Shown here: in pieces, positions 39,751-48,513 of the stretch
How the letters are laid out: the number at the start of each line of letters is the position of its first letter
How positions within the stretch are numbered: the stretch's first letter is position 1
Assembly (NCBI RefSeq): GCF_006345805.1
Contig: NC_043015.1
Coordinates: 18,600,001 to 18,664,000 of the forward strand
Source of the DNA: Octopus sinensis
Taxonomy: Eukaryota
DNA: 64,000 nucleotides
Reading direction: 5' to 3'
Notes under the pieces: generated by a model
The model's database searches: none
Told to the model about the DNA's origin: nothing
Seen by the model: only the letters and a program-made list of their open reading frames with translations
Translations under genes and position numbers: made by a program

Positions 39751-39938
39751 TCGCTATTATTTTCATATACAAGAACAGATTAGACAGTTCGAAGAGAAAA
39801 AAATCCAAATATCGGGCAGCAACAAGTAACCTGAGATGCCAAGAACGATTCTAAGTATCCTAGCTGTCCCTAATAACGCTGTTTTCTGGAGCTGTACTAA
39901 ACTAGGTTTTGTGCCTATTTCCTCTATCCATCAGTTCA
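39751..39938 (-). mobile_element. Dong family B extreme 3' end and UTR
   Basis: Minus strand ...GGCATCTCAGGTTACTTGTTG...TGTATATGAAAATAATAG matches the end of copy B1 (42259-42345). 39828-39938 is the reverse complement of 48403-48513. Confidence 0.9.
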
Positions 39939-40295
39939 TTGAAATTGAGAAAATGTGGCATCTCAAGGCGGTTGCAATACCAGTGATCGTAGGAGCACTA
40001 GGAATGATCAAGAAGGGAACCGAAAATTATATGAGAATGATCCCTGGCTTACCATCCCTGCAAGAAGTGCAAAAGATTGTCTTAACTGGTACATCACACG
40101 TATTGAGAAGAGCATTGTCGATGTGAGAATTATTACTACCCATGTATTTTAATTTAACTTAAAAAAAAAAAATGAACGAACTATTGAGTCTAGTTTAATA
40201 GACTACCAATGTATACTATGAGTTTCTTTGCCCTAGGAGTCGGGAAGACACTCGGCAAGAAATGGAAGCAAATTTGAAAGAGGAAAAAAAAAGGT
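39938..40295 (+). mobile_element. Dong family A C-terminus and 3' UTR
   Basis: IEIEKMWHLKAVAIPVIVGALGMIKKG...VQKIVLTGTSHVLRRALSM* then UTR and (AAT)n tail 40296-40601. Confidence 0.9.
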
Positions 40296-40601
40296 AATAA
40301 TAATAATAATAATAATAGTAGTAGTAGTAGTAGTAGTAGTATAACAACATCAGCAACAGCAACAACAACAACAACAACAATAACAACAACAATAACAATA
40401 ACAATAACAATAATAATAATAGTAATAATAATAATAATAATAATAATAATAATAATAAAAATAATAATATAATAATAATAATAATATAATAATAATAATA
40501 ATAATAATAATAATAATGATAATAATAACAACAACATTAATAATAATAATAATAATAATAATAATAATAATAATGATAATAATAATAATGATAATAATAA
40601 T

Positions 40602-42340
40602 GGTTAAATGAATTTTTAGTATATTCAGTATAGCAGACAACATAAGAAAATTAATTAGCTGTAGCATGAAGAAATGGAAAGTAGGTCTCTACTCAGGTGA
40701 CACACTCTTAGGGAAAGTTAATATCAAAAGAGGAATTTTCTAGGGGGACGCATTGTTCCCTTTATATTTGTCTTATATTTGATCTCCCTCAATCTAATAT
40801 TAAGGAAGGCAAAAGCAGGGTATCAGTTCAGAAATAGTAAAGGAAAACTTAACCATTTGTTCTATATGGATGACCTGAAGCTTTTCAGTAAGAATGGAAA
40901 AAAGATAGATTCCTTAATACAGACTGTAAGACGCTTCAGCATGGAATTTGGCATTGATAAGTGTGCAATATTAGTCATGAGAAGAGGACAGATAGACAAC
41001 AGCGAAGGCATCCAATTACCAGATTGCCAGACATTAAAATCATTGAAAGGAGGAGAGAGTTATAAGTATCTAGGAGTATTAGAATATGACGGAGTACTAA
41101 CTACAGAAATGAAAACGAAAATTGAGAACGAATACATCAGAAGAGTGAGGAAACTAATGAAGTCAAAGCTATGTGGTCCGAATCTAGTGAAGGCTATAAA
41201 TACTTTAGCAATATCGTTACTTAGATACTCAGCAGCTTTTGTAGATAGGACAAAACTGAACTAGCAAAGCTAAACAGAAGAACTAGGAAGGAATTCAATA
41301 TGAATGAAGGACTGCATCCAAGGGCTGGAGTAGCAAGATTATACCTACCTAAAAAGGAAAACAGAAAAGGGTTAATGTAAGTAGAAGACTGCGTTGAGTT
41401 TGCTACAGTAGAAAATAGACTCATATATAGGTAATAGTGAAGAAGTTTATTAAAAGCTGCTAGAACCACAGCAAGACAGGGTAACCAAATATCCAAACGA
41501 ATTTAAAAACCAGAGAAAATGAACAGAATTTATCTGACTGGCAGGAGAAGGAGATGCCTGTAGATTCCAAAAGATAGTTGCAACAAATAGTAATAGTGAG
41601 ACATGGTTATGGTTGCAGAAAGGAAAGCTGAAAAGGGAGACAGAAAGTTTGTTAGTAGTTGCACAAGATCAAGCGTTAAGACAAAAACCAAGTAGATTCC
41701 TAATGTAGATTATATAAATCAAAAGAGGAAAGCGTTACTCATATAGTAAGTGAATGTAGCATGCTGACACAGAGAGAATACAAGAAAAGACATGACAATC
41801 TAGGGAGAGCAATCCACTGAGAGATATGTAGAAAGCTAGGATTTGAACATACTGATAAATGGTAAGAACATGAACTTAGTAAAGTACTAGAAAGTAAGAA
41901 CTATAATATGTTGTGGGACATCAACATTCAAACTGACAGAGTAATAGAAGCTAGAAGTCCTGATTTGGTAGTAGTAGATAAAGAGAATAGAAAGTGACGG
42001 ATAATTGATTTTACAGTCATATAAGATGAAAACATTAATATGAGAAGTATTAAAAAATAGCAAAGTACCAGGACCTAGCTAGTGAATTACAGAAACTATG
42101 GAAAGTGCAGGTAAAAGTATCCCAGTAGGTATAGGTGCATTGGAAGCTATCCTTAAAGATCAGAACTGATGGATAGAGGAAATAGACGTAAAACCCAATT
42201 TAGTACAGCTCCAGAAAACAGTGTTATTAGGGACAGCTAGGATACTTAGGAGGGTTCTTGGCATCTAAGGTTACTTGTTGTAGCCTGATGTTAGGATATT
42301 TTCTTTTTCTACAGCCTAAACTGTTGAGTGTATATGAAAA
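40602..42340 (+). mobile_element. Dong family B copy B1, 5'-truncated, degenerate
   Basis: GIF*GDALFP, HLFYMDDLKLF, YKYLGV, HPRAGVARLYL, IPVGIGALEAI, QLQKTVLLGTARILRRVLGI; UTR ending TATATGAAAATAATAAT. Confidence 0.92.
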
Positions 42341-45894: not shown

Positions 45895-46112
45895 AATTCC
45901 TTTCTACTATAGGCACAAGGCCTAAGAATTTGAGGGAAGGGGTTAGTCGATTACACCGATCCCAGTGCGTAACTGGTACTTATTTTATTGATCACGATAG
46001 GATGAAAGGCGAAGTCCGACTCGGTGGAATTTGAACTCAGAACGTAACGACGGATGAAGTGCCGCTGAGCACTTTTCCCGACGTGCTAACGGTTCTGCCA
46101 GATCGCCGCCGC
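45895..46112 (-). mobile_element. SINE family 1 copy
   Basis: Reverse-oriented family-1 body between short AAT runs. Confidence 0.88.
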
Positions 46113-46167
46113 CTTCAATATTAATAATAATAATAATAGTAATGATGATGATGATGATGATGATGAT

Positions 46168-48513
46168 GCAGTGAAGGAAGACGTAGTGAGTGAGAAGCAA
46201 CCAGATTTAAAACTAACTAGTGCAGTAATGAGTAAAGTGTTAGAACCAGGACCAGATTTAGTTCAGGGGTACTGGCTAAAGAAATTTAGTAGTTTACATG
46301 GGAGGCTAAGGGAACAACTTCAGGAATTTCCTTAATGGAGGAATAATACCAGATTGGATGACTAGAGGTAGGACAATACTCATTATGAAAGTTAAGAGTA
46401 GCACTGGATTAACCATTAAGCAAAATATGCACGTGCTTAAGGCATCACAGAAATAGTAAATGGTTTACGACACAAAAGAAATCATTTTAAACTTGCTAAA
46501 ATAATATTTGGGATGCCTTATCTCTACTAAGTATAGAACCAGATGTATTATATAAGACTAATTTTGAGCATCTTTCAAAGACTTTCGAATTAAAAAAAGG
46601 AGAAAACATTTCAAATATAAAGTGGAAGTAAGCAAAAATAAACATTATTTTCTATCTTACTGTTAGATTTGTCTTATTTTGAAAAATGAAAAATTCTTTT
46701 ATGGTTTATTAAGAGAAAGGTTACAGGATGAGGGCTAGAGGAACGCATGATCCATTACATATAGACAATGCATTTCTAAAAATAACAGCTAGAAAGAAAA
46801 ATCTAACAATAGCATGAATAGATTATAGGAAAGCCTATGACATGATCCCATACTCACAGAAAAGTGAATGTTTGAGTATATTCAGTATAGCAGACAACAT
46901 AAAAGAATTAATTAGCTGTAGCATGAAGAAATGGAAAGTAGGTCTCTACTCAGGTGACACACTCTTAGGGAAAGTTAATATCAAAAGAGGAATTTTCTAG
47001 GGGGACGCATTGTTCCCTTTATATTTGTCTTATGTTTGATCTCCCTCAATCTAATATCAAGGAAGGCAAAAGCAGGTTATCAGTTCAGAAATAGTAAAGG
47101 AAAACTTAACCATTTGTTCTATATGGATGACCTGAAGATTTTCAGTAAGAATGGAAAAAAGATAGATTCCTTAATACAGACTGTAAGACGCTTCAGCATG
47201 GAATTTGGCATAGATAAGTGTGCAATATTAGTCATGAGAAGAGGACAGATAGACAACAGCGAAGGCATCCAATTACCAGATTGCCAGACATTAAAATCAT
47301 TGAAAGGAGGAGAGAGTTATAAGTATCTAGGAGTATTAGAATATGACGGAGTACTAACTACAGAAATGAAAACGAAAATTGAGAACGAATACATCAGAAG
47401 AGTGAGGAAACTAATGAAGTCAAAGCTATGTGGTCCGAATCTAGTGAAGGCTATAAATACTTTAGCAATATCGTTACTTAGATACTCAGCAGCTTTTGTA
47501 GATAGGACAAAAACTGAACTAGCAAAGCTAAACAGAAGAACTAGGAAGGAATTCAATATGAATGAAGGACTGCATCCAAGGGCTGGAGTAGCAAGATTAT
47601 ACCTACCTAGAAAGGAAAACAGAAAAGGGTTAATGTAAGTAGAAGACTGCGTTGAGTTTGCTACAGTAGAAAATAGACTCATATATAGGTAATAGTGAAG
47701 AAGTTTATTAAAAGCTGCTAGAACCACAGCAAGACAGGGTAACCAAATATCCAAACGAATTTAAAAACCAGAGAAAATGAACAGAATTTATCTGACTGGC
47801 AGGAGAAGGCGTTGCATGGTAGATTCCCAAAGAGTGTTGCAGCAAACAGTAATAGTGAGACATGGTTATGGTTGCAGAAAGGAAAGCTAAAAAGAGAGAC
47901 AGAAATGTATTAGTAGTTTCTCAAGATCAAGCATTAAGGACTGATTGGATAAAAGCCAAGATGGACAAAAGCCAAGTAGATTCCTAATGTAGATTACGCA
48001 AATCAAAAGAGGAAAGCGTTACTCATATAGGAAGTAAATGTAGCATGCTGGCACGGAAAGAATACAAGAAAAGACATGACAATCTAGAAAGAGTGATCCA
48101 GTGGGAGTTATGTAGAAAGCTAGGATTTGAACATATTGGTAAATGGTATGAACATGAACCTAATACATTACTAGAAAGTAAGAAATACAAGATGTTGTGG
48201 GACATTCAGACTGACAGAGTAATAGAAGCTAAAAGAGATTAGAAAATGACAGATAACTGACTTAACAGTCCCAAATGAATATGAGAAGTATAAAAAAATA
48301 GCAAAGTACCAGGACCTAGCTAGTGAATTACAGAAACTATGGAAAGTGCAGGTAAAAGTATCCCAGTAGGTATAGGTGCATTGGAAACTATCCCTAAAGA
48401 TCTGAACTGATGCATAGAGGAAATAGGCACAAAACCTAGTTTAGTACAGCTCCAGAAAACAGCGTTATTAGGGACAGCTAGGATACTTAGAATCGTTCTT
48501 GGCATCTCAGGTT
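46168..48513 (+). mobile_element. Dong family B copy B2, degenerate, with an AT-rich interruption at about 46400-46715, cut at its stop codon region
   Basis: PGPDLVQGYWLKKF..PDWMTRGRTILIMK (46250-46400), IDYRKAYDMIP, ORF 47036-47638, WELCRKLGF..WYEHEP, QLQKTALLGTARILRIVLGI. Sequence switches to family A at 48514. Confidence 0.92.

Follow-up and report, generated by a model that had tools for sequence, protein, structure and literature searches.

Cephalopod genomes are heavily rearranged. Among the mobile elements to be considered in such genomes, Dong and other R4-clade LINEs, reportedly characterized by Xiong and Eickbush in 1993 and by Kojima and Fujiwara in 2004, are said to be microsatellite-targeting elements of the RLE type, while twin priming by L1 was reportedly described by Ostertag and Kazazian in 2001. 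Dong-R4 elements have been annotated in octopus genomes (PMC9115989, PMC13282606), and Octopus vulgaris carries Dong-R4 families with recent insertions (PMC13282606). In Drosophila, Ranz et al. (2007) found inverted duplications at the breakpoints of 17 of 29 inversions, with a single breakpoint region being duplicated in 12 duplication-bearing inversions and with duplications that ranged from 46 bp to ~1.9 kb (median 321 bp; PMC1885836). Inversions can also arise when L1 insertion intermediates recombine with other breaks, including cases where twin-primed cDNAs form at separate ends (10.1101/2024.12.14.628481). As a rule of thumb, a pair of oppositely oriented transposable elements (TE), one at each breakpoint, is read as ectopic recombination (e.g., PMC12368964).

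The locus described here lies within a 64-kb stretch of Octopus sinensis DNA, which was analysed as a whole and is referred to as the window. It very probably records a real, single, non-homologous inversion of ~8.6 kb that divided two LINE copies, denoted A and B2, and that left 111 nt of B2 at both segment ends. The inverted interval supported by the arrangement of the split copies would be 39939-48513 or, equivalently, 39828-48402.

Copy A, on the minus strand, breaks off after ...ISAKEFD at 48514, and IEIEKMWHLK...RRALSM followed by a stop resumes at 39939 on the plus strand. The part outside of the inversion (A5'; 48514-50010, minus strand) extends from the RT domain (Pfam RVT_1) to ...ISAKEFD, comprises an ORF of 485 aa that is succeeded by two in-frame stops, and has an (AAT)25 array directly upstream (50011-50086, minus strand). 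The first element of the inverted segment (A3'; 39939-40295, plus strand) comprises the C-terminal 62 codons, with the stop codon at 40124-40126, and the 3' UTR. Two independent family-A copies on metagenome contigs, L001 and L003, served as references and are colinear with A3'; the motif KEFD-KL(R/S)KYKDL(L/E)-IEIEKMW is unbroken in both, as it is in many homologous proteins. Relative to L001, the copy in the window lacks AAGCTCAGAAAATATAAAGACCTACTCA, corresponding to the nine codons KLRKYKDLL, a stretch that is present in every homologous protein. This deletion amounts to 28 nt, or to 25 nt if the shared AA (48512-48513) and A (39938) are assigned to A, and the missing 25 nt are absent elsewhere in the whole window. 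A comparison copy at 16480-16700 reads ...KEFDKLS, a stop and YKDLETEIQNMWHLK. The initial annotation had proposed that A ends with KEFD at 48514 and resumes as IEIEKMWHLK on the plus strand, that ~25 nt resembling KLSKYKDLE (compare 16563-16600) are missing in between, and that AA and A microhomologies mark the junctions; all three proposals were borne out, including the reading of the comparison copy. The two halves, which would derive from one copy, both match L001 closely, with substitution identities of 97.8% for A5' and of 98.9% (coding) and 91.7% (UTR) for A3'.

Copy B2, on the plus strand, stops at 48513. Its body (46169-48402, plus strand) begins right behind an (AAT)5..(GAT)8 array, is decayed by numerous stops, frameshifts, and deletions, and is continuous with the right arm of the duplication (48403-48513, plus strand), which represents the B2 end in situ and whose last two nucleotides (TT, 48512-48513) provide the 2-nt microhomology with the next A codon (AA.). 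The left arm (39828-39938), with B2 sequence on the minus strand, meets the start of A3' at a 1-nt microhomology (A, 39938) and leads unbroken into the last ~77 nt of the B2 3' UTR outside of the inversion (39827-39751, minus strand). The latter aligns with the UTR of another family-B copy, B1 (42273-42345; 79% substitution identity), up to ...TGTATATGAAAATAATA, and is followed by a microsatellite (39620-39751, minus strand) that likewise lies outside of the inversion. It consists of pure (GAA)36, which appears as (TTC)36 at 39643-39751, succeeded by (CAA)n, which appears as (GTT)n at 39620-39642.

The two arms are reverse complements of one another over 111 nt with 110 complementary positions, the sole mismatch being C at 48413 against the complement of 39928 (G), where B1 has G. 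The 64-kb window contains exactly two occurrences of the arm sequence (chance expectation 0). B1 (42163-42272), the only other B copy, departs from the arms at 10-11 of 110 positions, which indicates that both arms derive from the same B2 copy. The reverse complementarity of the arms, their distinctness from the other family-B copy, and the stranding of the B2 3' UTR on the minus strand at 39827-39751 had each been claimed beforehand and were upheld, the last by the alignment with the B1 UTR and by the continuity of the arm. B1 and B2 have stop codons in common and diverge by ~10% beyond a converted tract of 600 nt with 2 mismatches; gene conversion or ectopic exchange thus seems to have been active between them. 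B2 also has several deletions and derived residues of its own, and no relative of family B exceeded 58% amino-acid identity among 5.8 billion proteins. Family B looks old and defective.

Behind A3', the inverted segment continues with the compound microsatellite tail of A (40296-40601, plus strand), composed of (AAT)n, (AGT)n, (CAA)n, and a long (AAT)n, and with B1 (40606-42345, plus strand), a 5'-truncated copy that adjoins this (AAT)n tail. Searches by tblastn with the homologue P0003 identified three LINE 3' fragments further along the plus strand, denoted C (42354-42811), D (44078-44230), and E (44410-44669), with (AAT)n/(ATG)n arrays at 43173-43463 and 44317-44405, also on the plus strand. 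Within 39939-48513, the plus strand carries every one of the six LINE fragments and five (AAT)n arrays, whereas the two remainders of the split copies beyond the segment (A5' and the B2 3' end) are on the minus strand. No other LINE cluster of the window mixes strands; in the others, the element strand is that of the adjacent (AAT)n array, with 10 plus-strand and 3 minus-strand arrays window-wide. Flipping the segment yields a single co-oriented nest like all other clusters of the window, and this strand pattern agrees with the earlier suggestion that a flip restores both elements and places them on one common strand.

One inversion would account at once for an A copy that lacks its 3' end, a B2 copy that lacks its 3' end, the presence of the missing pieces at reciprocal ends on opposite strands, and the mixed-strand cluster. 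The joints have only 1 nt and 2 nt in common, and no pre-existing long inverted repeat was found at the breakpoints, where the only repeat is the 111-nt duplication that the event itself would have created. Because A and B2 would have been co-oriented before the event, recombination between repeats cannot account for the inversion. Non-allelic homologous recombination between inverted repeats was accordingly rejected, as the two copies would have stood in direct orientation before the event and the breakpoints fall at non-homologous element positions, in line with the initial annotation, which had disfavored simple ectopic recombination between long repeats. The polarity of the inversion may be read from the integrity of the split elements, and the event probably took place in a single step. 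Its apparent recency depends on arm divergence, which is 1 mismatch in 111 nt (95% CI 0.02-4.9%), and gene conversion, which seems to have been active between B1 and B2, could also maintain the similarity of the arms. The inversion is best explained as a structural mutation without a function of its own.

As in the Drosophila inversions of Ranz et al. (2007), the sequence of one breakpoint recurs, inverted, at the two ends of the segment, no inverted repeat was there beforehand, and the duplication falls inside the reported size range. In contrast to those megabase-scale inversions, which are fixed between species, the present one spans 8.6 kb inside a nest of dead LINEs, its duplicated sequence is TE-derived, its second breakpoint carries a deletion of 25-28 nt, and its polarity is taken from split elements rather than from an outgroup. 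We give the specific version in which a staggered break was repaired by non-homologous end joining about an even chance. The prior state would have been a ~10.7-kb nest in which (TAA)n-targeting LINE copies of the RLE type, decayed and 5'-truncated, followed one another head to tail on the minus strand in the order (AAT)25 - A - (AAT)n - B1 - C - ... - (AAT)(GAT)n - B2 - (GAA)36. A first break with a 111-nt stagger, stemming from single-strand nicks on one chromatid or from slightly offset double-strand breaks on sister chromatids, would have occurred in the B2 3' end, and a second break in the C-terminal coding region of A would have been resected with the loss of 25-28 nt. The intervening 8.6 kb would then have been religated in inverted orientation by non-homologous end joining at microhomologies of 1 nt (A) and 2 nt (AA), with fill-in of the stagger leaving the 111 nt at both segment ends, inverted. 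Two points weigh against this version: a 111-nt stagger on one chromatid needs extensive unwinding, and the breakpoint lies 77-188 nt from a LINE 3' end and tail, as an origin coupled to retrotransposition predicts.

Taken alone, the signature would fit replicative template switching as well as staggered breaks. In a process of the FoSTeS/MMBIR type, a fork would copy to the end of the 111 nt, switch through 1 nt to the opposite strand at A, copy 8.6 kb backwards, and then switch through 2 nt into A5', which predicts the same product, with one joint duplicated, a few nucleotides deleted at the second, and microhomologies of 1-2 nt. GAA/TTC tracts stall replication and are fragile, and the first breakpoint is 77 nt from an uninterrupted 109-nt GAA/TTC tract, near which the fork perhaps stalled. 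However, expansion of the tract may postdate the event, the fork would have to synthesize 8.6 kb on the wrong template between two switches, and the templated insertions and extra copy-number changes that frequently accompany template switching are absent, such that we regard this process as rather unlikely. An origin in which B2 was newly inserted, with its RNA being reverse-transcribed from two broken ends at once in a manner resembling twin priming, appears distinctly unlikely. The 188-nt 3' end and tail would have been primed at the left microsatellite target and the 2.3-kb body from a second break in A through 2-nt pairing (AA:UU), the DNA between the breaks would have been ligated in inverted orientation, and the 111 nt would be the RNA stretch copied by both cDNAs. 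The topology fits exactly, with the 3' end and tail on one strand, the remaining B2 on the other, and overlapping element coordinates, and with the (AAT)(GAT)n side of the microsatellite target meeting the B2 5' end. The L1 inversions through twin-primed cDNAs and the recent Dong-R4 insertions in Octopus vulgaris noted above also speak for it. The opposite orientation of the two parts and their overlap, along with short microhomologies at the joints, are also features of L1 twin priming. Unlike in L1 twin priming, the two parts are 6.2 kb apart, the older DNA between them is also inverted, a second element (A) is reciprocally split, the element is an RLE-type rather than an APE-type LINE, and B2 appears to be older than the event. 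Ordinary twin priming during a single LINE insertion was rejected given the 6.2-kb separation, the older co-oriented elements in between, and the reciprocal split of A. The apparent age and defects of family B described above also argue against a new B2 insertion; had even half of the divergence between B1 and B2 accumulated at this site, ~11 arm differences would be expected and one is seen. Furthermore, a single paper in the literature library searched mentions twin priming alongside restriction-like endonucleases, and recent activity was not seen for the Dong element that was tested in O. bimaculoides (PMC9115989). If true, such an origin would represent a germline, non-mammalian RLE-LINE counterpart of L1-driven inversions, which are known mainly from cancer genomes and cell models.

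An assembly artefact, with either the whole segment or only the stretch between the 111-nt arms being misoriented, is improbable. The locus is highly repetitive, neither junction 40-mer had a match in JGI metagenomes, and the junction ORF and its neighbours had no exact-protein match in the contig index. Yet the window has no N gaps, and the joints are unique, non-palindromic, and marked by a duplication and a deletion that are both precise, which distinguishes them from fold-back chimeras and scaffolding flips; even if only the stretch between the arms were misoriented, 111 nt of B2 would still break up A in inverted orientation, and a rearrangement would remain. That latter configuration is also the intermediate of a two-step route, in which a 111-nt inverted B2 filler entered a repaired break in A, replacing 25 nt, and homologous recombination between the arms later flipped the segment. 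Exchange between the arms as they now stand would turn precisely this intermediate into the present state and back, and the 600-nt B1/B2 tract points to ectopic exchange here, but this route invokes two rare events, a short substrate of 111 nt, and an intermediate of which no trace is available, making it highly improbable. An interpretation without any inversion, in which A3' and the 188-nt B fragment each arrived as a separate 5'-truncated insertion and the convergent B2 and A copies lost their 3' ends to a deletion between them, could draw on the frequency of 5'-truncated copies in the window. It would nevertheless need at least three events and several coincidences: the A5' end and A3' start fall within nine codons of one another, the end of B2 falls within the B fragment, identity between the arms is 99% as compared to 90% for the only other B copy, and the pieces are reciprocal and on opposite strands. 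We roughly estimate that the joint chance of these coincidences would be <1 in 1000, and we consider this interpretation barely credible.

The event is a further case of a known type of inversion, ordinary apart from its clean anatomy, and because it sits in decayed repeats with no gene visibly affected, it has little importance by itself. What it illustrates is that split copies of strand-specific retrotransposons can reveal a kilobase-scale inversion, its polarity, and its breakpoints at base level without an outgroup. Since the arms are TE-derived, automated pipelines would miscall the inversion as TE-mediated ectopic recombination, which its anatomy rules out. A genome-wide scan for inversions that split elements in cephalopods could provide the frequency of non-homologous inversions and could show whether breakpoints cluster at LINE 3' ends or long GAA tracts.

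The elements that record the event are consistent, on the basis of their encoded domains and insertion sites, with R2-group, (TAA)n-targeting RLE LINEs, and the earlier label 'Dong' is borne out to that level only, while 'Dong-R4' is compatible with it. Pfam RVT_1 was detected in A (E=7.6e-13), weakly in B2, and in the homologues P0003, P0010, P0057, and P0110. In A and its homologues, CRFC..H....C is followed by ..KPDIV.., ..LIDMS.., and ..K.., a putative CCHC motif and PD..D..K region. Residues 27-736 of P0003 align with solved R2 proteins (9nl3, 9dou) through the C-terminal region; R2 structures were the only PDB matches, and the class is assigned from these rather than from Dong/R4 reference sequences. 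Pfam detected no AP-endonuclease domain in the longest homologues, whose N-termini are incomplete, or in ORFs upstream of the copy at 47-2785. Insertion into (TAA)n is orientation-specific in all window clusters, and each of the copies A, B1, and B2 adjoins such an (AAT)n array at its 5' end. The elements resemble the Dong/R4 clade in their RT domain, behind which the putative CCHC motif and PD..D..K region lie, and in adjoining same-strand (AAT)n arrays. They differ in that the present copies are 5'-truncated and decayed and in that (GAA)n, not (TAA)n, comes after the B2 tail. Copies of LINEs with 5' truncations are plentiful throughout the window.

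A decayed family-A LINE, copy A, extends along the minus strand from an (AAT)25 array (50011-50086) to ...ISAKEFD at 48514. On the plus strand, IEIEKMWHLK...RRALSM* begins at 39939; the 3' UTR comes next, and then a compound tail of (AAT)n repeats that is abutted by copy B1. The initial annotation had read these stretches as one element that stops at ...KEFD and resumes on the opposite strand, and comparison with independent family-A copies agreed. The copy on metagenome contig L001 was colinear with the window in one run (49912-48505 on the minus strand, then 39936-40350 on the plus strand), as was that on contig L003, and substitution identity to L001 was 97.8% for the 5' half (A5', 48514-50010) and 98.9% for the coding part of the 3' half (A3', 39939-40295). 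These observations indicate that both halves derive from a single copy. Across the gap, L001 reads GAGTTTGAC-AAGCTCAGAAAATATAAAGACCTACTCA-TTGAAATTG, of which the middle 28 nt are missing from the window. Because the AA is also assignable to copy B2 (TT at 48512-13) and the last A coincides with position 39938 in the arm, the unambiguous loss is 25 nt, with microhomologies of 2 nt and 1 nt at the joints, matching the approximately 25-nt gap and the AA and A microhomologies described earlier. The 25 lost nt were absent from the rest of the window, and KEF(D/E)KL(S/R)KYKDL(E/L)IEIEKMW was present in all sequenced homologues.

A second element, B2 of family B, is split reciprocally. Its body (46169-48513, plus strand) begins right after an (AAT)5..(GAT)8 array, and its final 77 nt lie at 39827-39751 on the minus strand, uninterrupted from the left arm of an inverted duplication. 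This displaced end aligned with the B1 UTR as far as ...TGTATATGAAAATAATA, after which a pure (GAA)36 tract follows; the alignment and the continuity with the arm both confirm that B2 stops at 48513 with its 3' UTR on the other strand. The two arms, 39828-39938 and 48403-48513, match as reverse complements over 111 nt (110/111), the window contains no third copy of their sequence, and B1, the sole other family-B copy, differs from them at 10-11 of 110 positions, so that the 111-bp inverted duplication stands as claimed. The lone mismatch is at 48413/39928, with the B1 state retained in the left arm. Arm divergence was 0.9% (1 mismatch in 111; 95% CI 0.02-4.9%), below the roughly 2% between A and L001 and well below the roughly 10% between B1 and B2 outside a converted tract, and an age estimated from the arms is a lower bound if they exchange sequence. 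Ectopic exchange does happen here, given a 600-nt B1/B2 tract with 2 mismatches.

Identity between B1 (40606-42345) and B2 (46862-48513) was mosaic: 97.3% over 40606-40904, then just 2 mismatches across the 600 nt of 40905-41503, and only 84-93% from 41504 on. The pattern resembles that of a recent gene conversion between two copies in direct orientation, separated by 6.2 kb. B1 (40606-42345) and B2 (46169-48513) also have common stops (GIF*GD, KGLM*VE, DS*CRL within the CCHC motif, and N*[W/C]IEEI), and their 5' truncation points and flanks differ. The defects could come from a master copy that was already defective and was mobilised in trans, or conversion could have spread them.

The window (64 kb, G+C about 36%, zero N) was crowded with trinucleotide microsatellites and the decayed remains of retrotransposons, and tblastn of the window with P0003, a near-complete homologue of 765 aa, recovered about 20 fragments of a single LINE superfamily. 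Dong-like elements lay head to tail, forming co-oriented nests. Across the whole window, each Dong-like fragment was on the strand of its adjacent (AAT)n arrays, which start at 2904, 14692, 15821, 32155, 32937, 33524, 40296, 40424, 43172, 43409, 44317, 50011, and 63053; this agreement is direct evidence that the elements in this genome target (TAA)n in an orientation-specific manner. The proteins carried RVT_1 (Pfam), then a CCHC motif and a ..PD..D..K.. region, residues 27-736 of P0003 aligned to solved R2 retrotransposon proteins (9nl3, 9dou, and 8gh6), and Pfam found no AP-endonuclease domain. Together with the (AAT)n strand match, these features suggest that the elements are R2-group LINEs with a putative restriction-like endonuclease and one-way insertion into (TAA)n, the latter being a known hallmark of Dong. 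In octopus genomes, RepeatMasker-type annotation names such elements Dong-R4 (PMC9115989; PMC13282606). The closest named protein relative was P0247 from Octopus sinensis, and the closest DNA copies were the family-A copies of two sewage-metagenome contigs, L001 (ERZ22666216) and L003 (ERZ22665968), at 95-96% identity to the window. DNA of this animal or a very close relative is therefore present in sewage samples, and is plausibly food-derived.

Flipping 39939-48513 reunites A5' with A3' and the B2 body with its UTR. Copies A, B1, C, D, E, and B2 and five (AAT)n arrays then all lie, like the flanking (AAT)25, on the minus strand. As the initial annotation had anticipated, both elements are restored and the result is a single head-to-tail nest; other clusters in the window are likewise uniformly oriented. 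Such nests are co-oriented because each new one-way (TAA)n-primed copy would land in the tail of an older copy. Strand switches within this nest are confined exactly to the split elements. Collectively, these results support the interpretation of an inversion, which is a fresh instance of a known inversion class in non-functional DNA. Its interest is modest and lies mainly in offering an example resolved to the base, on which a genome-wide scan could be modelled.

One breakpoint is duplicated in inverted orientation, a short stretch is lost at the second, and the joints show microhomology of 1-2 nt and no filler. This signature is the same as that described in Drosophila, where 17 of 29 inversions had an inverted breakpoint duplication and 12 of the duplication-bearing inversions had a single breakpoint region duplicated; duplication sizes ranged between 46 bp and about 1.9 kb (Ranz et al., 2007; PMC1885836). 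Those authors invoke staggered breaks, then fill-in and non-homologous end joining, and a sister-chromatid version of their account needs no long overhangs to produce a duplication at one of the breaks and a deletion at the second (PMC1885836). We consider that such staggered breaks, followed by fill-in and end joining, would best explain the octopus inversion, with roughly an even chance of being correct. Replicative template switching would give an identical product, and the pure GAA tract of 109 nt, at a distance of 77 nt from breakpoint 1, speaks slightly in its favour; we regard it as unlikely. It is less probable still that B2 was inserted during the event by retrotransposition, with the microsatellite target priming a cDNA of 188 nt and the tail, and the broken A end priming another of 2.3 kb. 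The topology agrees with this base for base, and comparable L1 intermediates occur in cell models and cancers (10.1101/2024.12.14.628481), but family B appears old and defective, as its two copies have common stops and differ by about 10% outside the converted tract, B2 bears private deletions and derived residues, and the arms differ at just 1 of 111 positions. Nor was a close family-B relative found in a very large protein collection, where the best match had only 58% amino-acid identity, so that a family-B consensus could not be built.

Misassembly seems improbable; an inverted 111-nt piece of B2 would still interrupt A if the inter-arm stretch alone were mis-oriented. Non-allelic homologous recombination between inverted repeats was rejected because A and B2 were originally direct and the breakpoints lie at non-homologous positions, and no other inverted pair was found at the breakpoints; the earlier argument against simple ectopic recombination between long repeats thus holds. 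Ordinary twin priming does not account for B2 parts 6.2 kb apart or for the reciprocal split of a second element. Independent insertions combined with a deletion would require three events and several coincidences; moreover, target-primed reverse transcription leaves LINE copies with 3' ends, unlike A5' and B2, which both lack them.

The 40-mers over joint 1 (39938/39939) and joint 2 (48513/48514) were absent from JGI metagenome contigs, and a 96-aa ORF across joint 1, a 61-aa ORF beside joint 2, and the 485-aa A ORF were absent from the encoding-contig index; no ORF of at least 30 aa crosses joint 2. A homology search with the 96-aa junction ORF matched 17 proteins. The six that were read were ordinary family-A C-termini in which the 9 codons lost from the window's copy A are intact, the B-antisense part of the chimeric joint being present in none (0/6); one of these, P0251, covers 78% of the ORF, and nine of the remaining 11 cover at most 69%. 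An Octopus sinensis contig (L002) encoding the nearest named relative was rejected as the orthologous locus, as it holds a different A-like copy (77-82% identity).

At window positions 1-65, a pure (TTC)15 tract (2-46) abuts a minus-strand Dong-like copy that ends at about residue 475 of 765, without a 3' end. This is a second 3'-truncated LINE beside a GAA/TTC tract, located at the window end, and is possibly another rearrangement breakpoint. A repeat of about 500 nt lies just past (AAT)n arrays at 43504-44035, 33107-33539, and 59772-60179, and also in L002 (10661-11540, 82-85% identity), and another occurs in about 10 copies beside microsatellites (45886-46167, 50035-50313, and others). Both are probably SINE-like or LINE-end elements with (AAT)n tails as landing sites. 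An unbroken 469-aa ORF (33672-35081, plus strand; RVT_1, E=1.8e-7) is unrelated to the Dong-like family and terminates in a (TA)n-rich tract; it may represent a retroelement of Penelope-like or another type. At 36000-37400, where G+C rises locally to 45% (versus about 36%), the minus strand carries a proline-rich ORF of 225 aa, overlapped by an ORF with the motif ..IIIKPADKGGAVVVW.., which we take to resemble retroelement RT N-terminal motifs. Finally, the minus strand at 56221-56664 retains part of a DDE transposase of mariner/Tc1 type, matched weakly by the Pfam families Transposase_1 and DDE_3.
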